Under the pieces are notes generated by a model. It worked only from the letters and a program-made list of their open reading frames with translations, ran no database searches and had not been told where the DNA came from. A stretch of 63,412 bases of DNA, the filler included, from Reticulomyxa filosa (taxonomy: Eukaryota > Protista > Foraminifera), in assembly GCA_000512085.1 (NCBI GenBank). It is 17 parts of 17 records of this genome, joined end to end, with 100 filler letters (N's around TTAATTAATTAA, not from the genome) between each part and the next. Parts side by side here need not be neighbours in the genome. Positions count along the whole stretch, not along the records: positions 30,805 to 40,034 come from ASPP01005421.1; 16 more parts are not named here. One strand, 5' to 3'. Below, one piece after another: positions 2,120 to 40,034 of this stretch (position 1 is its first letter; each line of letters begins with the position of its first letter). A program made the position numbers and the translations under genes.

Positions 2120-5100
2120 ATGTCCCTGCAACAGTGGAGCAAGAAGCCAACCGAAAAAGATAAAGATGCCAAGCCCAATGGAGAAGACAACGAGGATGAC
2201 GAGCACTTAGTTTCGAAGAAAAAACAGAACAGCCTCAAGCCAATAAAAAAAAACAACAAAAAATTGCGGATAGGCAACAGTAACGCGTTTAAAAGCGGAA
2301 AAACAGCAAGCTCAAATAAAAGAGATAAAAGATTTGAAAAAGCAACTAAAAAATTCAGTTCCAAAAGAGGAATATGACAAAGTAAAGAATGAAACAGATC
2401 AATTAAAACTCGATTTGTTGGATGCATCTTCTCAGATACAAGCGTTGACACACGACCTAAGTTTCACTTTTAAAAAAAAAATATATACCATATAAATTCA
2501 CTCCCCTTTATACGTATACAATGATTTGTTATCGTGATGTGACAGCAAAAGCGAGAAAAGAATGCAAAGAAAAAGAAGAGAAGATAGCAAAAATGGAAGA
2601 GCAAATGTCGACGTTGAAGGGATCGAATAACAGTGAGATGTTAAAATTGCAAAAGGATTTGGTAAGCGCTCAAACGAAATTGGCGACGCAGCAATTGGAA
2701 ATGGAGGAAATGACGAAGGAAAAAACGAAAAACGCAAGTAAAATTGAAGAATACGCCAATGAGATAAAGGAATTGCAAAAAAGGTTAAATGAAAGTATGC
2801 AAATCTTTCAAAAAGCGCAATTATCGTCAACCAATGCCTTGACTAATTCAAACCAAAATGAAGCCTCGATTCATCCGCGTGACGCCAATAGCAGTGATTC
2901 CGAATGGAAAAAGCGAGTTTTGTTTGTTGTCTTTGCATTGTTCCCTTCTCTTTTCCCTCTGTTCTCTCGTAATTCTCTGTTTGACGTGGACAGTTGGAGG
3001 AAGTCCAATTGCGACATCACTTGGAATTGCAACGTCTGCAAAAGGGGTACGAATTGGAAATAACAGCATTGAGTGTGGAGATTAGACGATTGAAGGGCAA
3101 CAAAGCAGACACGTATAAGTTGGGCACTCCATTGCAAGGCCAGTCGCATCAATCGATGACGGATAAAACAGATGGCTTGCGTGAGTTGGCCCAAGAGACA
3201 AACGAACAATGGATAAGTTACAAGGCCATTGTGGAAAACGAAATTGCCGTTCTCAAGCAGTTGCGTTTTGTGATGTTTCACACATATTTGTATTCTGATC
3301 AATTTGATTCGATCATTTTTTTTATTTTTTGATGTATATTACATCCCAATAGGTACATATAACATATAACATATAACATATAAAATAAGACGTTTGATGG
3401 CATTTGAAGAAGGAAATGTCGAAGTGATATTGCGCATCGACTTGGAAGAGGCTGTGAAAAATCGCATCGGCGCACCCAGGAGACCCGCTCCTCTTCGTCC
3501 GGACGATGCATCTCCGCCCCATAGCAGAGCCAGCAGTCACGAGTCCCTGGGCATATCGCCAGAGAACAACGTGTCGCAACATTTGACGTCCGAGGCATTG
3601 GCACGACACGCCCAAATGAATAATGACAATGACGAATTAGACGAAGACAAAGCCGCTCATTCTTATGCTCGAATCAACGGTATTTTGTCTGGACAGTCAG
3701 TTGTCAAAGAAAATAGTCCCACTCCTGTTTTTGAACAAATGTCAGATGCAGCGAAAGAGGCATTGTCTCGCAAACTTCAAATGCGAAACCAAACCAGTAT
3801 GTAACGACCATGTATTCAATGGAATACAAGTGGAGATTGAGGACATATATGTGCATACGCATATCATATGCTATACGTCAATATCTATATACATATACAT
3901 ATATATATTTTATGTGTGTTAAATAAATAAAACAAAAAAAAGGTAAAACAAAACAAAAATACCATTGTCCCAAGGTAAAACTCGTTCGGCAGCTGGTCCA
4001 AATGGAACACATAGCAATATGATGGAGCACAATGGCAATGAGTTGCAAAAGTCCAACTCCAATCAGCCCCCTCGACCTGTGCATAAACCGACCTCCAGTG
4101 CCTCGAATATTCTCGATCCATACAAACGCAGATCACACACTAATGCCAATCGAGCTTCTCAAACTCCCACTCAATTCAGACCGAGTGTCGCTGGTGGAGG
4201 AATCGCAGCCCAAGAGTGGGTCAGTTTGTTGCGACGCAAAGTCATTGAAAACTTTGGCTCCAATCCAAGTGTACCCAGAAGTCCGAATGAGCATGCGTTA
4301 CCACAATATGTTGGTGACACAAATCCTCAAGCCTTTTCGGTATATACATTCATTTACATATTCTTGTGTTCGTGTACCACGACATAACACCTCTTTGTTG
4401 AATATTCAGCCCCATGGTCACGTTTCCCAATTGTCCTCCTCGTCTTTCAAAAGTCTATCTCATGCATCATCACATGAGGGATCAATAATATCCATCTCTG
4501 AAATTGACAAGTATCTAGACGTTGATGAAAATGGAAATTCTAAAATTCCAGAGGAATTAAAATCGTCACAAGAACAACTTAAAAATCTGCAACGTACATT
4601 GCTTTTTTTGTCTTTTTTATTCATTTCAAAACATAATTTGTGTGTACTTCTAAAAAAAATATCATAATACCAATCAAGAAAACGAAGTTCACAAACACAA
4701 GCAATTGCACATAAGATATGCTACTGAAAAAAAGCAATGGCAGGAAAAAATTAAAGAGCTACAAGACCAGGTCGCGCAAATGGAACAAACACTCAAAAAT
4801 ACACAACGCAAACTTCGCGAAAAAGTAGAACAAAATACATTGCTTCGGGATCAATTCCAAATGCTACAACAGCAATTCAGTGAATTGCCTGCTCAAACAC
4901 AAGCGGAGGCACAAGAACGTGTCAAATTTCGACAGCAAGAACAAATGAAACTTCAGCAATCTCAACAAGCATTGTACAATCAGATTGACGTTCAACGACA
5001 ACAAATGGTACAATTGCAAGGCGCTCTTGAACAGCAAAGGTTTACAATTGAAGCGTTGCAAAAAGAATTAGACCAAAGCAAAGAAAAAATCAAAAACTTA

Positions 5101-5447
5101 GAAAAAAAGTTGGAAGAAGCCCAATCCAATCTTGCAAAACAAGGCAAGTCAAGATTTTCTTTGTGTTTGAAATAAACGCGCAATTGTAATAATTTTTGTT
5201 TTATGTTGTACAGTACCATCCACAAGTAAAGAGCTCCTGCAACAGCAAGTCAAAGTATTGAAAACTCAGCGTAAAGTGTTGGTGAAAGAGGTATTATTTT
5301 ACTTTTGTTTTCACTGTCTACTTTTTGTCTGTTTGATTTAGAGAACAATAGTAGATTTGTTTCTGTTTGTAATAGATCAAAGATCTTCGTTCACAAAATG
5401 AGATGTTAAAAAATATGGTAGTTTCAAGTGGCAAAACTCCAGAGTAG
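2120..5447 (+). CDS. Large multi-exon coiled-coil/low-complexity hypothetical protein (possibly two genes)
   Basis: Consecutive Q/E/K-rich heptad ORFs (2521-3063, 2994-3332, 3394-3804, 3965-4387, 4705-5175) separated by AT-rich introns; last exon ends ...SGKTPE* at TAG 5445-5447. Confidence 0.6.
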
Positions 5448-5665
5448 AAATTGATTTTGTTGCATTTATTGCATTTTTGTTTTTTTTCCCACAATGTAAA
5501 TTTTTTAATTCTTAATTCTTTGATCCAAAGCAATATTTTTTCTATGAAGAGTGAACACATTTTCGCTTCTGAACAAAATTCTGCAATAAATGTCATACGA
5601 ACACTTTTACGTTTCTTTTCATCCAGTGTTTTACTCTATGTTTCCCAGTTTTGCATTTGCTATAT

Positions 5666-7058
5666 TCAATTGTAACTCTCATCGTCGGATGTAGTCTTTC
5701 TTGGGAGTTCCTTTTCAAAACTTGTATATCCTTGTGTTTCATCCCCGTCAAGCATTTCCCTTTTTTCATCTTCTGAATCTACGGCCTCACTCTGATAAAC
5801 ATCTTTTTCTTGTTGTGGAGATCTTTCAGCATGATTCTGATTCGAATTTGCATGAGGTATTCTTTTTCTAAATCATTATCTTCTGTTGCGTCTGCTGTTT
5901 GCAAGCATTCGGGACCATGAGACTTTTTCTGTTTTTGCGAGTTTCTTGAGTTGTGATTGGCAGGAACATTTGCCGAATTAACATTTTCAAAATAATGAGC
6001 TGACGCTGCAACAAACCTGACATGTTATGGTCAGACAAAATAAAGAGAGGGATTGTTCCATGTCAATGTAACACAAACAAAACTCTGAGAAAGGTTTCCA
6101 TCCCTCTTGGTAGCTTGAACCAACAATATCAATATACAAGCGGACAGCAAAAAGTTTATTGAGATCGGAGGAAAAATCTGTTTGCTGAAAAATGTCACAC
6201 CATTTTTGTACAAAATTTGAAACATCACCAAGCGTTTTGTAAAATTTCACAGGTTCAATTGCAGATCTGTTATTCAATACAATTAGTCTACTTTGTTTCG
6301 CTCTATGATATCTTTCGAACATAATTGCTAATTTATTGTCTCTCATAATAGACTTGTATTCATTCGTCATTGTGCGCAATAGGTCAATGAGTCCAAGGTT
6401 TTGAGTTTTTTTTTTTTCTTGTTTCCTTTACGCGTGTCAACATTGGTGTAAAACATAGGTGTTGCAGTAGCCTGAACTATCGTTTCACTCAAAAAACTCT
6501 GTAATTCATTGTAATTGGATTCTGTCTTTTTTTCATGTAAAGAAACAAGTTCAGTGTGTATGTTTGAGTAAATATAATTTCTTTTTTTTTGGAGTTAGTT
6601 TTTTTGGACGTGGTACATGCCATTTTTAACATGGGTTGGGCTTGTTCGACCTCAAAAAATATTTCCAATAATTTGTCCCCACAGTGCATTTTTACACTCC
6701 AAACATTTGATTTATCTTCAAACACCAACCAACAACCGATAATAATAAGTTGCTTGTAACGTTGATTTAAGATGGAACACACTTTCGGCATAAAGTATGC
6801 AATACCAGACTCCAATGTTAGACTTTTTCTATCATCCTCAATCTCAATAATTTGTTGCTTTTGATTTTGTATTTGTGCCGGCTTATTTTGTCCATATGCG
6901 TCTTTATCACTTTGTTGGAAAGGTGGATTGGTTTTCTTGCTCGTCTTTTTATGATTATCTTTGTTGTTTTGAGGGTGGTCAACAGATGTATTGTGCTCGT
7001 CGGCGTTGTTGCTTCTCTTTTGTATGATACTGGACGGCGTACTATTTGAGATACCCAT
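5666..7058 (-). CDS. Hypothetical protein with possible N-myristoylation start (MGISNS)
   Basis: ORFs 6489-7058 and 5987-6379 plus an acidic terminal exon ending at TGA 5666; no family recognised. Confidence 0.5.
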
Positions 7059-7898
7059 CAGATTGCAACTGATTTTGTTTTAATTTGTAACTATTAAAAG
7101 TTAAACTTATTTTGAAATTTGAAATAATTTCTACCTTTCTCGTACAAAAACAACACCTGCACACTGAACACGTACCTAACGATAAATATTTCTATATGCA
7201 ATAGATTATAGGTAAACACAAACTATTACGTGCTTTTTACTTTCATCACTATACTGTTATGAAATTTGTTTTATTTTTTTTGATGACGAAATGGAATATT
7301 AGATCTATCAAAAAGATAGAAATTTAGATAAGTTTTTGAAATTTGGTTTTTATGCTCGTTGAAAAATTTTTTGATATAACTTATTTCAAAAACAAAGGTA
7401 TGTCAATGAGGGATGCAGTTTTTGGCCAAATAGTCGTTTGAACTTCTTATCTTTTTATCTTCTTCTATAAGTCATGGATATCATGGCCATTCTTAAAGAG
7501 ACTTTATTAAAATGAAAATCACTTACTTGTATCAATCTAGCATTTTACACTTTCTGATCCAAACATTTCTTTTTGATAATATTCTTGGGCTAGTCTAGTG
7601 GTAGCTTAACTGCCCAAATTAATTTTGTGGAATGGTATTTACTGACTAATAAATGTCAAAAACATTTATGCTTACTGAAGAATCGTTTAACACATTAAAA
7701 ATTTAAACAATAACAGTTTTTGGATCAACTGTGATCTGTTAATTTTAAACTTTCTATATTTTTTCATTTGAATTTTTTTCTAAACGCTATTTTACAATTT
7801 ATATTATTTTTATCAAGCGCCACAATTTTATATTTTTTGCCGCAAGTCGTGTTTTAAATTTAGAAATGGCCATACAATTGTGGGATGTCCACTGTAAA

Positions 7899-7998
7899 NN
7901 NNNNNNNNNNNNNNNNNNNNNNNNNNNNNNNNNNNNNNNNNNTTAATTAATTAANNNNNNNNNNNNNNNNNNNNNNNNNNNNNNNNNNNNNNNNNNNN
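7899..7998. other. Artificial contig linker (N44-TTAATTAATTAA-N44). Identical linkers start at 17186, 23215, 25128, 26541, 29487, 30705, 40035, 45653, 47825, 49118, 54806, 55999, 58629, 59825 and 61754
   Basis: Same 100-bp structure each time, with a 12-mer carrying stops in all six frames. Confidence 0.98.
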
Positions 7999-10900
7999 GG
8001 CGAAGAAAATGATGACAATGATAACGATGATGATAATAATAAAGAACAACGACAACAACAACAACAACAACAACAACAATATTATGCTCATTTTGACAGA
8101 CAATCGTTAATGCAAGATATCGATGGTGACATGTGCATGCAGGACACAATCAATGCTGACACAATTGCAACTGCAAATGCGACAACGACAACAGCAGTTG
8201 CAATGGCGGGCAATGAAACAGCGTTGGCGAAACAGTCAAAGGGACAGCGCGAGTGCAAGGAGGAACTGCAGATGTTGCTAGAGAAAGAACGACAAGAACA
8301 CAGTGACGAGAAAGTGATGTTTGAACAGACGGTCGAACAGCTGCGCGGACAAATGGACGTGTTGCATCAGGAAAAAGAAGCGTGGAATAATCGATATCAC
8401 GAACTCGAAAGCGCCAAGGCGGAATTGCAAAGCAGACTTCAGCTGGAAATGATCAAGTTTGAAAAAGAAAAAGAAAACCTATCCAAAGGCTTTGAGCAGC
8501 AATTGCTACAGGTTCAAAATGGCGCCGTTCAGGCCATTGACTCGACGACAGAGGAAAATATGAAACTGAAGTTACACATTGCGCAGCTGAAGGGACACAA
8601 CGAGGCCTTGGAATTGGAATTGCAAAAGGCCTTTGAACTCATCAAATCCAAAGACAATCAATTGACCGACTTGCAAGGTCAGCTGACTCTGTTCCAACAA
8701 CGTGTTGGCGATACCAATGCACATCTGCGCACCGCCCAAGACGCGCTGCAACTGGCACATGCCGACAATGCCAAACTCGCTCAGCAGCTCATCGAATACA
8801 AAGACCATCGCACACAGGCGACGCGAGACTTGGACGCTGCCAGGCTTGAAGCCACCGATCTGCAAACTCAAATGGCCAAACTAAAGGAAACACTCACACA
8901 TAAAAATACCAAATTGGAGCGCTTGGAAAATCAAGTCGACCAGTTGGATAATGACTTTAACAAATTAAAATTAAATTTTGATTCTTTGACTGATGATCAC
9001 CAGATTCTTACCGATGCATACGAGTTATATATACATATATGTATATATGTATATATGTATATGTGTATATACGTGTGTGCTTATTTGTAACTTATGTACG
9101 TATATAATGTGTACTACGTACTTTATCACAACAAAAGGACATTAAAAGATGAAAATAGTCAAACAACCAAGGCTTTAGAAGAGTCTAAAAATGAAGTACA
9201 ATTGCTGCGCGTATGCTTTTTTTTTTTTTGTCATTTGTTGTAAACTTGGATTTATTTGTGTGCACTGCCTTTTGTTCGGATAAATACAAATTAGATTCAA
9301 ATAAAAGAAAAAGAAGAAAGCATCGAAGAAAACAAAGACTCGATAAAGGAACTCACCTCACAACTTTCCGACACTGTCTCGAACAGTGACGAAGCAATGA
9401 ACAAATTGTTACACAAAAATGAAGAAGTAATAAATAAACATGTTTTTTTTTTTAAAAAAAAAATAAGTATACGTCAATAAATAAAAAAAAACGTATATTG
9501 ATTATACAAACATAAAGTTGCAGCACTCGTTAAACGAATTAAAGATAAACTTGGAAAGCACAAAGTCGGAATGGACGAAAATGGGCGAAGAGTGCAAAAG
9601 CAATGAACATAAGCTGAGCGCATTGGAAAGTGCGAAAAAAGCGACAGAACAAAGTTTGCGTGATTTCCAAAGCGTGTATGAAACATTGGAAAGCAAACAT
9701 CAAGAGCAATGTCGTATTTATGAACAATGCTTGCAAGAATTGGAAGATTACAAAAGTCGTTGTGACGAGTACAATCACGAGATTGTCTCGTACAACGTCA
9801 AAGTGTCGCAATTGACTCACGAAAATCAAAGCTTGCATGAAAGGGCCAAAGAGTTTGAAAAAGAGGCCAAACACCAAATTCAAAACTTGGGCAAGAATTT
9901 AGTGCAATTGGAGCAAGAGTCAGCCACTCTTAAGCATGAGTCCCAGAAAATGCAAGCAGCCCATGAACAGGCAATGCTACACAATCAAACGCTGCTGCAA
10001 GCCAAAGAAGTTGAAATTACTGAATTAAAACAATCTTCCGAAAAAGCGCTTCAAGACATTACCAATCAAAAACGTGACCAACAATCGCTCTTCAAACAGC
10101 AAATTGATACCATTCAACAAGCGCACGCCCAAAAAATTGAACAGCTGAATGCCACATTAGCCCAACAATCCAATCAATTTACCCAAGAGCAAACCAAGGT
10201 TTGAACTCACACAACGCTGAACAATATACGTATCACTGACATGTATATACATATGTATATACATTTTGTGTGTGTATGTGTAGTGGACGAGCGAAAAAGA
10301 AGAACTAGCGCAAAGATGTGTGACATTAGAAAAGGAATTGGAAGACAGCAAAGGACAAACAAGTGAAAAGAGTAAGTTGTTGGAACTCTATCATAAAAAC
10401 TTGTCCGAATTCCAAAAAGCAGTGCTTAATGTACCAATGTCACCAAACAAGATGATGGAGGGACAACGAGAGGCCTTTGAAAACGAGCAAAAGGTAGGTA
10501 ACTCGTTGAGAAAGTAAATTATAACCAAAAAATTCATATACGACATATATATATATACGTAATTTGTATACGTATATGTATATGTGTATATAGAATCAAC
10601 TGGAAAGACAAATAATATCCGTGTTCAAAAACGCAGAATCACAATTTGAGACAAACGAGCGCCTACATCGCGAAGCGTTGCAAATGATGCAAAAGCAAAC
10701 GGGGAAACTGGAAGCCGAGTTGAGCGCGCAAAAGGAGTTATATGCGACGTGTTCGACACAACTGCAAGACATGACCGTACGGTATGGAGAACTGACGGAA
10801 GAGTTTGAAAAAAAGAAACAACAATTTAATCGAAAGATGGACGAAGCACATGAACAAGTAAAGGCAAGCAAAGATCGTCGAGATCGATTAATCGAAGCAT

Positions 10901-12464
10901 ATGAAGAACGATTACGTATACTGAAAGAAGAACTGGAAGAACACAAGAAAAAAAAAGACATGTTAACACAAGAGCTAGTGAGCCAGAAAGAAATATTCAA
11001 AACCAACACAAACGAATTGGCGGAACATAAAAACGAACTCAAAAATAATAAAGAAACGATTGGCAATTTGCAGAAGCTAGTGAAATCATTGAAAACGGAA
11101 AAAGAAAGTGTTGAAAAAAAATTGGACCAAAGTCAAACACAATGGCTTGGAGTTCAACAGATTCAATCCAAAATGGAAAGCGATTTGACCAAATCCATTC
11201 AAGAGCGTATGGATGCTATCAAAACGAGCAAACAAATGCGGATTTCAGAAGAAAAAGTGTACAAAGAAATGATGGAGTGGAAATGTAAATACAATGAGTT
11301 GAAAGAAATCACGTTTCGAAATGATTCGAATGTGAATGAATTAAAAGCAAAGATTTCGGAATTAGAAGCTGAAAATGTCCGATTGGCTGGACATCATAAT
11401 GCCCAACAACGTATAAATCATTTGTTGGATTTGAAGAAGGAAATTAATCAATTAAAACAAACGAATAGGCTGTTGATCAACAAACTCAATAAATATGAAA
11501 GGTAACTCAATACGCATACGTACTTATATATCGTATATACCGTATGCATATAATACTTATTTTTTTAATGGGATAACGTTGGCAACAGAAATTCGCTATC
11601 CTCGTCCGTTGCTTCTTTCGACCATGCGTCTACGCTAATGACTGATCCTGTTGAAGATGACGCGCTCAAAAAAAAGTTGGAAGAGATGCAATTTGAAAAA
11701 ATTAAATATGATAAACTAATGGAACAACTTGGCCGTGCCATTTGCAAAGCAGCACAGAAGAGGTTACATGTATAAAATATACACATATACATATAAATTA
11801 CATTTTTGTCCGTTCTCTTCGTTATTTTGGTTCTTGTTTTTGTTTTAACTTTTCAATACAAAACATGTGCATACATATCTATAGTGTCGGAACCATTGCC
11901 ATCGACGAGAACAATCGTAAAGATATTGAAGATCAAATAATGCTAGTGAACACCATGGAAACGGCAATTGTTAACAGAGATGACGAGATTGTGCGATTAA
12001 AACGTGAAAATGACAAATTGGCGCATGATATCAAAATTCGTGACGAACATGTAAAATTGCTGCAAGATCAAATTGGCTTGTCGAATATGTGGAAAGTTGA
12101 TTCCAATGAAAAGAAGCTACAAGACGATGGGATAGGGTCACTCAATATGCCACAGTCCTATCGGATTCCTCGACAAAAGTCAAGACTAAGCAAAAATTCT
12201 CCAGTTGAACCTCAATCTCTTGGCACTCCCAATACTCCACTTTCCAAAACAAGTGATCCCGGCGATAACAAGCCTCTCCAACCACACACTGCGCATCCAA
12301 ATTCTCGACATCACACAAAATTGAAACCTAGACAATCAAATAGTGGCAAGCTCTTGGAAATTGAAATGGAACGCAAAAAACAATTATCTTTCAATAATGA
12401 AAATTTTGAGGATGATATCAGTCAAAGTGGTGATGTTGATGCTGAAATGACTGACATGGCATAA
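7999..12464 (+). CDS. Very long coiled-coil protein with HMMR/RHAMM or kinesin-12 (KIF15)-type C-terminal motif, 5' truncated
   Basis: Exons in ORFs 8110-9090, 9518-10204, 10320-10517, 10621-11505 and 11742-12464 are heptad-rich. LEAENVRLAGHHNAQQRINHLLDLKKEINQLK resembles the LxGHQNxxQKIxxxxxLKxEN motif of HMMR/KIF15. Confidence 0.7.
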
Positions 12465-13095
12465 CCTTTATCAAGCGTTGTCGTTTGTTACATACTTGAT
12501 CCATAGGTTCATATTAAATTTCTTTTATTCTTGTTTGTTTGTGTTTCTTGGTCTAATCACATTTAATTTTGTTTTTTTTAACTTTTATTTAACAACATTA
12601 TTTAAATCTCTAAACTAAATTTTGTAGCAACTCTCATTAGTTTTATCGAAAACAGGAGCATTTTACAACAAATACGTATGCCATCGTACATTTTATACGA
12701 TATTTCTGAACAGTTCATTCTGTGCTTGTTTGTGAGTCCTGGCATTATTTTAATTTAAAACAAGCAATTCTGTATTTTGTCAATATTTCTAATTTGTGGA
12801 GTGAGGAACGTTAGATTAATCGTGATAAACAGTATATTAATTTATAATCAGTTTTGACAAATGAAATATTAAATACTTTCTACTTAGGCAGATTTAGTTA
12901 GTTAGAATAAAGTTGTGGTAAAACAGTGATGAAAAAAAGTTTTGAGTGATTCCAAGAAATAACTCGAAATGACATAATTAGGATTATTAATGAAAAGTTG
13001 ATTAAAGACACACTCCGAATGTAACACTGTCAAAAGAGGAGGAAACAGAGGAAAAAGGGGTCTTACATAAAAGGAAAAAAAAAAGTGTGTATATG

Positions 13096-34380: not shown

Positions 34381-37240
34381 TTAGTGATTTCCTTGTTTCA
34401 AAATATTTTTTTTACAAATGAAGTGGTCGTGAACATATTGTTTAAAGCTTTCCTTTTTCATTTTCAAGACTTTCTTGTTTTGCTTTTGCATTTTGTAGTA
34501 TTTTCTTATTTTATTTGTTGAAAATTTGTTGTTAGAATAAAATTCGTTCATATACACTTCGACTAAAATTGTCAAAATCTTAAGAAAGAAAAGAAAAAGA
34601 TAACAGACTTCAATGTTATCAATTTTTTTCTTAATGACTTTGACACTAATTCTTGCTGTTCTTCAACGAGCTTCTTTGCCCATAGAACTACCAGTTTCTT
34701 TCATGTATTGCTGTTGAATTGTATGATGATTGCCATAAGTAATAACAATGACATTCAAAAATGGAAAAAAAGATAATTGGAAAATAATACCTCCAATGCC
34801 TTCCACTGTTCTTCATTTTTTTTCCTTAATTTTGCAGTATCGGATGAAAAGACGTTCAAAGTGGATGAAGAAGACTGCTGATCCTCGGCTTTAATTTTAC
34901 ATTGAGTTTGACCATACAATTCATTATTATCCTTGTTGCTCCTACCTTCGAGAGGACGGCTTTGACTTTGAAAATGTGGAGTGGTATTGTGCCCTTGGAG
35001 TTGTTCTTTCTTATTCGAAATTGAATTGTTCTGTTGAAAAAATTTAATGGATTTGAGCATATCTTGTGATAGCTGTCGCAATTTGAGATTTTCATCTTTC
35101 AACTTTTTGTTACCAGTTTCTAAATTACTGCATTGTGAGGTAAGTTTAGAAAGTTGATTCGTGGATTCTTTTTGTTTGTTTTATAGAATGAGAGACGTTA
35201 AATCTATGCATAAAAAAAACACACAAAAAATAAATAAAACAAACTGATGAGTTCTTGTCGAGAAACATCCAGTTCTTGTCTCATCGCATTGACTTGTGTT
35301 TGTCGCTGTGTCAAACTTTGTTTGTATTGTTCAATCGTTTGGGTGTGACATCGCTTTTCATCTTCAAATGTCTGGGACACATTTTTGTTGGCTTGTGTAA
35401 TTTGCCTTTTCAAAGCAAGATTTTCATTTTGCAACAATTGGATTTGATTACCAGAGCGAGCTGTTTGCGACTTCAACTGTTCAATCTCTTTTAAATATAT
35501 TTGTGTATTCGACAATTGGGTATGGTATTGTCTTTGATAATTTTCCAATGACTGTTTGCATTCATTGATACGTTGGTACATTTTTTCAATTATGCCGTGG
35601 TAGTTTTTATTTTGCGTATTCATTTGACTTTTGACCTTCTCAATTTCCGATACCAAGGTATTCAGCTGCATGTTGTATTGTTGTACCAATGACTCGCAGC
35701 GACTCTTTTTTTTTTCAAAAAAGCAAGAAAACACAGTTTGGACATATTTTGTATCAATTTATATCAAGTAAACTTAACTTGCTCATTTTGCAATTGTAAC
35801 TGGAGCGACTGGACTTTTTGCTCATACTCATATTTTACTTGTTCCGTGCTAACATGATATTTCTAACAAAAAAAAAAAAAAAAAAAGCAAAAAATATGGA
35901 TCATCTTCTTGAAAAAATCATTTGTCTGTTCTTGTTGTTGTCGAACACAAAACTTGAATGGATTCTTGTGACAGTTCCAGCTGTTGCTTCAGTACTGACA
36001 TATCACCCTCTGATGATTGACTTTTTTGCTGCGATAACACCAATTCTTTGGCCAATTTGTCAACTTCCTCTTTTTTTTGAATTGTCATCTCTCGTATAGC
36101 CTTTCATTTATTGTTGCAACATCAGACCAATCAAATACTTTGTTTGTTTTTTTGGCTATCATTTGTTGCCGTTTGGAGGGAGGAAAAAAAAGATACGTTT
36201 TGTTTGGTTGTTGGTTCACTTTGTTATGATCAATTTGCATCAATTCAATTTTTTGCTGGACAGACAACAGTTCTGTAGAAATCTGTTTTTTTTCTTCGTC
36301 CAAATGATTTATTTGCTTTTCCATTAGCTGTTTCGATTGCTTCATCTAGTACAAGTTGCGTGTCATTGATACGTATGCACTTGTGCGTTATATATTGTAT
36401 AACTGTTTTCCCTCTTAAAAAACAAATGGTAATAACCTCTTTTTCTATTGCTTGGTTTTGTTTTTTGAGAAGTTGCATCTGATTTTCTTGGTTTTGTTCA
36501 TTGATTTTGTATTCTTCAATTGCAATCGATAGCCTTTTGATTTCCTTTTCTTTTATCAGCAATGCCTATGTTTGTTTCAGCAACATCACCAAAACGAATT
36601 TGCGTTGATCGTTTCGACGTCTGTTCCCTCTTTTTTTTTTTTTTACTTCACTTCATTGTACTCTTGAACAACTTTTTCATATCTCTGTAGTCAACCAATC
36701 AAATTGTTCTTTCGTTTTACACTTAAAAAATTTTTTTTTTTTTTCGAAAACCGATTGTTTGTTTCATAACTTCTAGCTGCTCGCGTCGTTGTTCAGCCAA
36801 ATCGAAGTTGAACTGAATATTTTGCTTTGATGTCCGATATTTTAATTTCAACATACCATACTTCTGTATCCCATTAGCAACATATGCCCTTATGCACACC
36901 TTTTCCTCCATGCTATTCTAGATAAAAAATAAGGAAAATACACAACACCATTGACCTGTTCTTGAAACTTGAGCTTCTCTGTCAATTGACGCATGTTTTG
37001 GTCATGCATTTGCCCCAACTCGTAGGGTCTTTGTCTATTCAAAGGATCGAGAGGCAAAGGATGGTGTGTCATATGTGGTGTTCACCAAGTATGAATCTGA
37101 TGAAATAGAAATAGCTCCATCTATGATATAACTCATGTTACAGATTATAATATGTGGCAAACCAACGAGGAAGGGGAGCACCCGAACCGTTTCAACTCAG
37201 CTTGGTACATATGGGGATGATCGATTTTCTCATGAAGAAA
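34381..37240 (-). CDS. Multi-exon coiled-coil hypothetical protein (ends approximate)
   Basis: Q/E/K-rich exon ORFs 36890-37072, 36245-36562, 36085-36345, 35204-35734 and 34755-35102. Confidence 0.6.
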
Positions 37241-37289
37241 CAACATTTAGATCATTTTTTTAAAAATATGTAGTTTTTAAATATGATTT

Positions 37290-37811
37290 TGGTTATCAAA
37301 TGCGCGGATATTTCACCATTGCAAAGCAACAATAACAAAGACGATAATAATAAAAGAAGTGCTATTGGTGTGATTGGTGGTAATGGATATACAATTTGTC
37401 CTGAATCATTTGATAATTCTATTCGTATACGGGATATTGAATAAACTAAACAGTTGATTGAATTCAAAGGACATCAAGATTGGATTAAAAGCGTAAAATA
37501 TGTGCAAAATGAATTATGAATTAATGGTAGCGCAAATACAATATTATCTGGATCAAATGATTAAAGTGTTCATTTATTTGATATCAGATCTGGTCAATAA
37601 ATTCAAATATTCAGAAGACATAAAAATATTGTATGACGTTGAATATTCACCATTTGTAGTAAATAATATCGAAGTTGGATGTAATTCAAATATAATATGT
37701 CCTGGATCCAGTGATAATAAGAAGGAATTATATTTAATCAAAGAGAATGGAATATGTTGTATTGAATTTATATCAATGAAAAAGAAAAAAATGATTAAAG
37801 AAAAAAAATGA
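37290..37811 (+). pseudogene. Decayed WD40-repeat family fragment
   Basis: ADISPLQSNNN...IGVIGGNGYTICPESFDNSIRIRDIE*TKQLIEFKGHQDWIKSVKY and VEYSPFVVNNIEVGCNSNIICPGSSDN, with stops and frameshifts. Confidence 0.8.
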
Positions 37812-38619
37812 CGGTTGTGGCATTTATTTATATTATGGTTTATTTATTCGTGTTTGGGATAAAAAACACATAAATTACTTTTCTGGTTTTGTAATTCGTG
37901 ACAAAAAACAAACATGAAATAGTCTAATTCATTGATATATTTTTTATTCTTAGAATCACTAAATCTATTTCATATGTTTTCTTTTCGCTTACTTTCAACT
38001 GACATGTTGTGACAGTATAATTTTTTCTTTTATGGTTACAAGTCTTACTTTAATGTATTTTGTACTTCCATTAATTTTTTCATATCAAACATTTTGTGTT
38101 GAAAAACAATACTATCCACAAAAGCGAATGTGATCTTCGTTTTAACTATAACATAAACTAAAATACATCCATAATTATATTGGCTTTTTCATTCCTTTTT
38201 AAGTATATTGTTTATTACATCTTTCACAAAATACAGTTCATTCTTATTTGATCAATATATCAAAAACAAATTGCATTGCAAAAATGATTTAAAGCAAAAC
38301 ATTTTTTATTACAAATGATAAATGCCAAATATTAATAAAATCTGCATCTATTGAACAATTGTAATAAAACAAAAAATAACTACTACTTCATTTAGATATA
38401 ATCATAATATAACTGTTAACAAGTTAACAAATAAATTAATGTTAAAAATATTAAAAACTACAAATTAATATATATATACATTTTATCAATTAAATATTCG
38501 AAAAAAAATAAAGCTTTTAAAAAAATGTAATAACGGCAAACACAAAAAAAAAATAAAAAAATAAAAATAATTATTTTTTTTTATTTAAAATATTATTAAA
38601 AAAGAAAAAAACATAATAT

Positions 38620-40034
38620 TATTTTTGTTTAAGGGTTGGGTACCCGTTGGAGGCAATACGGATTGTGTGGAGCGTTGGTGACCTATAATACAAATCAAAT
38701 ATTATTTAAAAAATAAAAAAACTTACATATTATTTTTTTTTTGTTCAAGGGTTTGGATACCCGTTGGAGCAGCGGCGGGAGTGTGTGGGGCCTTGGTGGC
38801 CTATAAAACATCAAACATCATTAAAAAAATTAAAAAAACATAAAACAAAAACATAACTTTTTTTTAAAATTGACAAGGGTCGAGAACCCGTTGGAGGATG
38901 AGCGGTGGGCATTGGGGCCTCGGTGGCCTATAAAACAAATCAAACGTCATTAAAAAAATAAAAAAATAAAAAAAAAAACTCAACATCATTATTTTTTTTT
39001 GTTCACGGTTGGGTACCCGTTGGAGGCGATGCGGAGTGCGTGGGGTCTTGGTGGCATATAATACACATCAAATATTATTTAAAAAAATAAAAAAACATAA
39101 AAAAAACTTAACATATTATTTTTTTTTGTTCACGGGTTTAGGTACCCGTTGGAGGCGAGGCGAGGTCGTTGGGGCCTTGGTGGCCTATAAAACACATCTA
39201 ACGTCATAAAAAAAATAAAAAAAAGAAAACAAAGACTTAACAATTTTTTAATTTTTAGTTCACGGGTTAGGTACCCGTTGGAGCATTGGCTGGAGTGTGA
39301 GTGGCCTTGTTAGCCTATAAAACATGACACCATTAATTAGTAATACAAATAATATGAAACAAAACATACTTTTTTTTATTATTGGACACGGATTTGGACC
39401 CGTTGGATATTGAGAGGTGGGTATTGTGACCTTGGTGGCCTATAGAACAAATTAACATCATTAAGAAAAATAAAAACATTTGAAGTAATTTAACTTATTT
39501 TTTATTTTGGTCCACGGGCTTTGGTACCAGTTGTAGCAGCGGCAGTAGCGGGGTAGGCCTTGGTGGCCTATGAAACACAAAAATTATTAAATGAAAAAAA
39601 ATATAAAACAAAAACATACTTTTTTTCTATTGTGTACACGGGTTGGGTACCCGTTGGAAGAGTTTCGTTGGTCGTTGGTAGCCTATAAAACATAACAAAC
39701 GTCGTTAAAAAAAAAAATTATAAAACATAAACATACCTTTTTTTTTTAATGGATACAGGTTGGTGCACCCGTTGGAAATGGAACGGTTGGAGTGGGACCT
39801 GCTTTGGTTACCTATAAAACATAACAACCTTAATTAAATATTTAAAAACATATAACAAAACATACTTTTTATTATTATTATTGACACGGGTTTGGTCCCC
39901 GTTGGATGAGGAGCGGTGGTCATTGTGAATTCATTGGCCTATAGGACAAATAAACATCATTAATAAAAGAAAGAAACTTAAAAAAAAACTTAACATTATT
40001 ATTTTTTTTGTTCACGGGTTGGGTACCCGTTGGA
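38620..40034 (-). repeat. Tandem array of at least 12 units (~117-133 bp): GC-rich core with conserved ends and variable middle, AT-rich intron-like spacer; candidate micro-exon array
   Basis: Plus-strand consensus cacgggttgggtacccgttgga-[variable]-ggccttggtggcctataaaac. Cores at 38644, 38761, 38888, 39017, 39146, 39275, 39400, 39528, 39651, 39769, 39899 and 40027 (last truncated). Confidence 0.93.

Follow-up and report, generated by a model that had tools for sequence, protein, structure and literature searches.

A candidate cluster of mutually exclusive micro-exons encoding Thr/Pro/Ala-rich peptides in the foraminiferan Reticulomyxa filosa

Arthropod Dscam is the best-known case of a large array of exons from which one of many is chosen. 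Alternatively spliced exons also encode the Ser/Thr/Pro stalks of CD45, CD46 and CD44, where they are few, additive, in-frame cassette exons. Mutually exclusive exon clusters include exons 4, 6, 9 and 17 of arthropod Dscam (PMC6071210, PMC5740500, PMC1397879), and exon lengths are not divisible by three in 60% of the human clusters (PMC5740500). The MEG genes of Schistosoma contain series of very short exons, mostly multiples of 3 and separated by introns of 0.1-5 kb, which are thought to diversify a secreted protein (bioRxiv 10.1101/2023.06.21.545858). The LRR exons of brown-algal ROCO genes are symmetric, 72 nt long and chained in frame, and encode folded repeats (PMC11378527). A precedent of another kind comes from SMN2 exon 7 and tau exon 10, in which a stem holding the 5' splice site represses the cassette exon (PMC9311317). 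In a literature search that covered few subscription journals and did not extend to the genome paper of R. filosa, we found no one-of-many exon array reported in Rhizaria.

Reticulomyxa filosa is a giant freshwater amoeba belonging to the foraminiferans. We analysed a 63,412-nt stretch of its DNA (the window, to which all positions refer), in which a first-pass annotation had proposed an array of at least 12 variable micro-exon units. We found 11 complete units and a fragment of a twelfth, arranged in tandem on the minus strand with a period of 115-130 nt, at the end of contig ASPP01005421.1 (9230 bp in all). Each unit consists of an acceptor-like site, a short Thr/Pro/Ala-coding core and a donor-like site. 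On the minus strand, where every core starts at its higher coordinate, the full cores are U1 (39899-39938), U2 (39769-39811), U3 (39651-39682), U4 (39528-39567), U5 (39400-39439), U6 (39275-39314), U7 (39146-39184), U8 (39017-39055), U9 (38888-38927), U10 (38761-38800) and U11 (38644-38682); U0 (40027-40034) is what the contig end leaves of a twelfth core, namely its 3' end. Re-measurement returned the lengths first reported, namely 40 nt in U1, U4, U5, U6, U9 and U10, 43 nt in U2 owing to one additional codon, 39 nt in U7, U8 and U11 and 32 nt in U3, all of them taken from a draft assembly in which homopolymer errors could alter them. The reading frame is intact in seven of the 11 units and shifted in the other four: U3 carries an 8-nt deletion, U7 has lost 1 nt from its middle, and U11 is a decaying sister of U8. 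We also verified that U8 has lost its acceptor AG (TAT replaces TAG) and that U1 has GG instead of the first GT. Base composition changes sharply along each unit, GC being 61% in the cores, 55% in the following 14 nt and 13-15% in the remaining spacer. A 9-mer spanning the donor occurs in 11 in-register copies, with 13 matches across the contig versus 0.75 expected. The single insertion among intact cores is of 3 nt; length-changing indels affect 6 of 12 units over the 12 nt that follow the first GT and are rarer within cores.

Phase enumeration over all AG acceptors and all GT or GC donors gave, in 7/7 intact units, an open exon entered at phase 0 and left at phase 1, including U2 and U4. The predicted product of an intact copy has 13-14 Thr/Pro/Ala-rich residues, or 23-24 with a more distal donor, and the seven single-frame core translations of the first-pass annotation were reproduced. 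The enumeration likewise upheld its proposal that such 3n+1 exons cannot be chained in frame: no open 3n option exists in U10 or in U6, which has a stop right past its first donor, and canonical sites therefore exclude any in-frame chain running through the array. If the units were instead constitutive repeat exons, a single mucin would have to be assembled from them, either as 39-nt exons through non-canonical GG-AG splicing or by reading in shifting frames. GG does stand at the end of every unit, and joining all 11 cores happens to leave one open frame. However, non-canonical sites would be required despite a canonical-position GT in 11/12 units, and shifting frames would not preserve the single codon pattern of the seven intact cores. 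A version with 51-nt exons, raised earlier as an alternative, is ruled out because the GT in question lies at 49-55 nt, is absent from U9-U11 and in U6 is preceded by the stop. We consider constitutive joining the least probable of the readings weighed here.

The variable middle of the cores has a 3-nt periodicity in one frame (chi2 52.6, reached in 0/5000 shuffles), and Thr, Pro, Ala or Ser occupies 36 of its 49 codons versus 23.7 in shuffled sequence. Periodicity of this strength argues against a non-coding array, whether of small structured RNAs or of satellite, without a protein product. The units do stand out as GC-rich islands of 55 nt amid AT-rich spacers, and each has one or two small hairpins, but an Rfam search of the units returned no match near threshold, folding z-scores ranged from -1.0 to +0.9 and covariation was absent. 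We judge a non-coding origin, entertained earlier as a structured ncRNA or satellite array, very improbable. A snoRNA or spliced-leader array was ruled out by the Rfam result together with the variable cores. Scans of viral and prokaryote genomes were blank and so lend no support to a CRISPR-like or viral repeat. Metagenome searches, which like these scans have low sensitivity for units so short, gave zero matches to a strict unit pattern, and to a loose one just bacterial-like loci with GC of at least 41% and zero profile matches. A word-index protein search of the unit peptides, of low sensitivity for 13 residues, found zero matches, and a protein profile of these peptides, in a search insensitive to 13-residue matches, found a single one, in an unrelated translated satellite. 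The latter lies at 3001-12918 of an unrelated metagenome contig (L124), where a long tandem satellite has been called as a 3305-aa protein, and the match is due to chance.

Strongly variable middle codons had been noted from the start, and the divergence estimates agree: F81 distance among the seven intact cores rises from 0.11 (acceptor) through 0.39 (first 12 nt) to 0.91 (middle) and drops to 0.09 over the last 7 nt, which makes conservation at the exon edges roughly ten times that of the middle. Edge conservation is no proof of function, since the 39-nt copies keep splice-like edges through ~20% divergence. A variable middle between conserved ends would also suit a cassette store operating at the DNA level, in which silent copies would give variable middles to an expressed exon via gene conversion or exon shuffling. 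Frameshifted copies could still serve there as donors of pieces, the core tree differs from the flank tree (with low support), and exon shuffling has precedent in brown-algal ROCO genes (PMC11378527). Each unit, however, keeps a full intron-length spacer and acceptor features, and no expression site is known for such a store, which we regard as improbable.

The spacers, counted from the first GT up to the following AG, measure 78-90 nt (mean 86.3), and the mean intron length in the R. filosa genome is 87 (PMC13746701). The cores are preceded by a T-rich tract, a branch-point-like motif at a distance of 22-25 nt from the acceptor, and TAG. The 87-nt spacer between U9 and U10 (38801-38887, minus strand), for example, runs from GT and a hairpin arm through an A-run and the second GT to a T-rich tract, a branch-point-like motif and TATAG. 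Complementarity of the first donors to U1 snRNA is poor beyond +2. The donor consensus for R. filosa draws on two annotated introns. A second GT follows 30-34 nt downstream of the first donor, past the A-run, in every spacer. Units U1, U5 and U9 have a degenerate first donor or none, and in them the distal donor (GTATGT in U1 and U5, GTTATG in U9) yields open exons of 73 nt (39866-39938), 70 nt (39370-39439) and 70 nt (38858-38927), all 3n+1. The corresponding extension contains a stop in U2, U4 and U6, so only the nearer donor could work there. Arrival at the same phase by two donor routes accounts for unit U1, which has no first GT. Beyond the first donor (39866-39898 in U1, 39749-39768 in U2; minus strand), four consecutive codons (Pro-Val-Ser-Ile) carry four synonymous differences between these two units, although U2 has one additional base ahead of them; the differences hint at past selection on a longer exon. 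A hidden compensating micro-exon within the spacer was ruled out, its AG-GT pair not being consistent across units.

A short stem of 6 bp (4-8 bp from unit to unit) is predicted to span the first donor in 12/12 units, with -5 to -9 kcal/mol, a loop of variable length and the GT in the 5' arm (for example 40014-40030 in U0, minus strand, from predicted fold and alignment). In the alignment, 89% of cells are paired and some changes preserve G-U pairs. The 12-unit alignment contains zero compensatory changes and its pairing is not above that of shuffles, for which reason we treat the donor hairpin as a predicted, inherited structure. A second small stem is predicted over the acceptor in U4, U5, U6, U7, U9 and U10, with a 5-nt loop resembling that of the donor hairpin.

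Substitutions among the cores give modest support to selection still acting at the protein level. Second codon positions differ least (0.31 versus 0.63 and 0.50; column permutation p 0.025), and a neutral-drift simulation assuming a star tree gave p 0.005-0.025. The codon-position bias anticipated for these exons is thus upheld by permutation and simulation but not by parsimony counts on trees (21/14/21 or 18/16/19 changes per codon position, not significant). Frameshifted U11 served as an internal control: of the 8 sites at which it differs from its sister U8, 5 are second codon positions. Synonymous change at conserved residues, another early claim, holds for single codons but only weakly overall, pN/pS being 0.91 in the coding frame and also in frame 1. 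With pN/pS at 0.9 and tree counts short of significance, the codon pattern could be largely inherited, and the substitutions fit a free exchange of Thr, Pro and Ala rather than residue conservation.

These measurements also bear on the main rival to a cassette spliced one copy per transcript, an array of dead or mostly dead duplicates. Here the exon-intron unit of a mucin-like gene would have been amplified by unequal crossing-over, with at most one copy used and the others decaying as pseudo-exons in a genome rich in broken genes. The pN/pS value and the tree test, the frameshifts in 4/11 units, the loss of one AG, the lack of a gene model over the units and a broken gene nearby all favor decay. 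A ten-fold contrast between edges and middle, however, would be unexpected if decay were uniform; the intact copies keep their second positions, whereas U11 loses such conservation; and two different donors keep the same phase. On balance a dead array seems unlikely to us, if well within reason.

The surroundings of the array were read on the whole contig, for which the NCBI annotation lists four genes and none over the micro-exons. The array runs past the contig end (40034) with its 5' side off the contig; as first described, no flanking constitutive exon is visible, and ASPP01005421.1 holds no upstream exon. The broken gene, 0.8 kb from the array, is a WD-repeat gene on the plus strand (37280-37810) with stops and frameshifts, recognized by eye in translation; its pieces gave zero Pfam matches, and NCBI puts a 100-aa gene on part of it. 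Farther on are two annotated coiled-coil-like genes (34381-37009, minus strand; 220 and 355 aa) with weak coiled-coil Pfam matches only, which may be a single split gene. We rejected the coiled-coil gene as host because the broken opposite-strand WD-repeat gene sits between, nesting being possible all the same. Another annotated neighbor is RFI_06548 (31638-33143, minus strand), a putative mannosyltransferase (PF11051), whose intron 1 (119 nt) starts in GC-richer sequence and may be mis-called and whose intron 2 contains an AT/AC microsatellite. A weak candidate for the last exon of the host gene lies at 38289-38347 on the minus strand (GC 20%), with a T-rich acceptor, 18 phase-1 codons and a hydrophobic, GPI-signal-like end. 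Acceptors resembling the one at 38347 make up 3/58 of the T-rich acceptors in three R. filosa contigs, and we treat this exon as a lead that may have arisen by chance.

Judged from its sequence, the locus is a real array of duplicated, putative phase-0/phase-1 micro-exons whose copies are gained and lost. That it functions as a birth-and-death cassette of alternative exons, with one copy per transcript, is the likeliest of the readings weighed here, though a proposition that we hold in even balance. One exon and its intron would have been duplicated repeatedly, as the observed tandem structure suggests, with copies born and dying, four of them now frameshifted. The 5' part of the host gene would lie past the contig end. 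Since the exons are entered at phase 0 and left at phase 1, a productive mRNA would most simply hold one copy, spliced to a phase-0 donor on its upstream side and to a phase-1 acceptor on its downstream side. With weak first donors that hairpins conceal, skipping would be the default, and an mRNA holding zero, two or three copies would lose the frame and be eliminated. Because the frame returns with four exons, it would be unable by itself to enforce exclusion in so large a cluster (PMC6071210). Composition suggests that the products would be variants of a short segment, mucin-like and probably O-glycosylated, and it is from composition, too, that a surface or recognition role is suggested. 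Our fullest proposal, which we advance tentatively and think more doubtful than not, is that at least 12 micro-exons, spliced one per transcript with skipping set by the donor hairpin rather than by a docking site, diversify a segment of a surface glycoprotein, possibly for recognition between fusing pseudopodia. If splicing follows this scheme, the array would represent a protist case of exon-array diversification that arose independently, possibly with hairpin control of each exon, and one that escapes gene annotation; if the units are unspliced, it would be a tandem duplication of the ordinary sort in a draft genome rich in repeats.

Like known mutually exclusive clusters, the array has homologous exons in tandem that agree in phase and nearly in length, the length not being divisible by three. 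Similar length and canonical splice sites are found in 7/11 units, and the seven intact units share frame and phase without an in-frame stop. These are sequence features by which mutually exclusive exons are predicted (PMC5740500), and they make the array a candidate cluster known here from DNA alone. The initial likening to Dscam is borne out in part, the units being exon-like and sharing one coding frame. The array exons are 40 nt long and specify low-complexity Thr/Pro/Ala peptides, whereas those of Dscam specify parts of Ig domains. The array further differs in its single-celled rhizarian host, in the predicted hairpin over each donor and in its two donor classes. Our search of 37800-38610 for a docking site found none, pairing with the repeated elements being no better than in shuffles, and the upstream intron lies off the contig. 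It shares very short exons in series with the Schistosoma MEG genes, but its exons are 3n+1 and homologous, with spacers of 78-90 nt. Brown-algal ROCO genes offer a non-animal likeness in tandem homologous exons with variable positions, but the array exons are neither symmetric nor chained in frame. The array is therefore not a member of the Dscam, MEG or ROCO type. Its putative 5' splice sites would lie within a stem as in SMN2 and tau, where single cassette exons are concerned, whereas here the hairpin is predicted and repeated in every unit. Exon choice in the array would vary a glycosylated stalk, as it does in CD45, CD46 and CD44, by selecting one of many exons rather than by adding in-frame ones.
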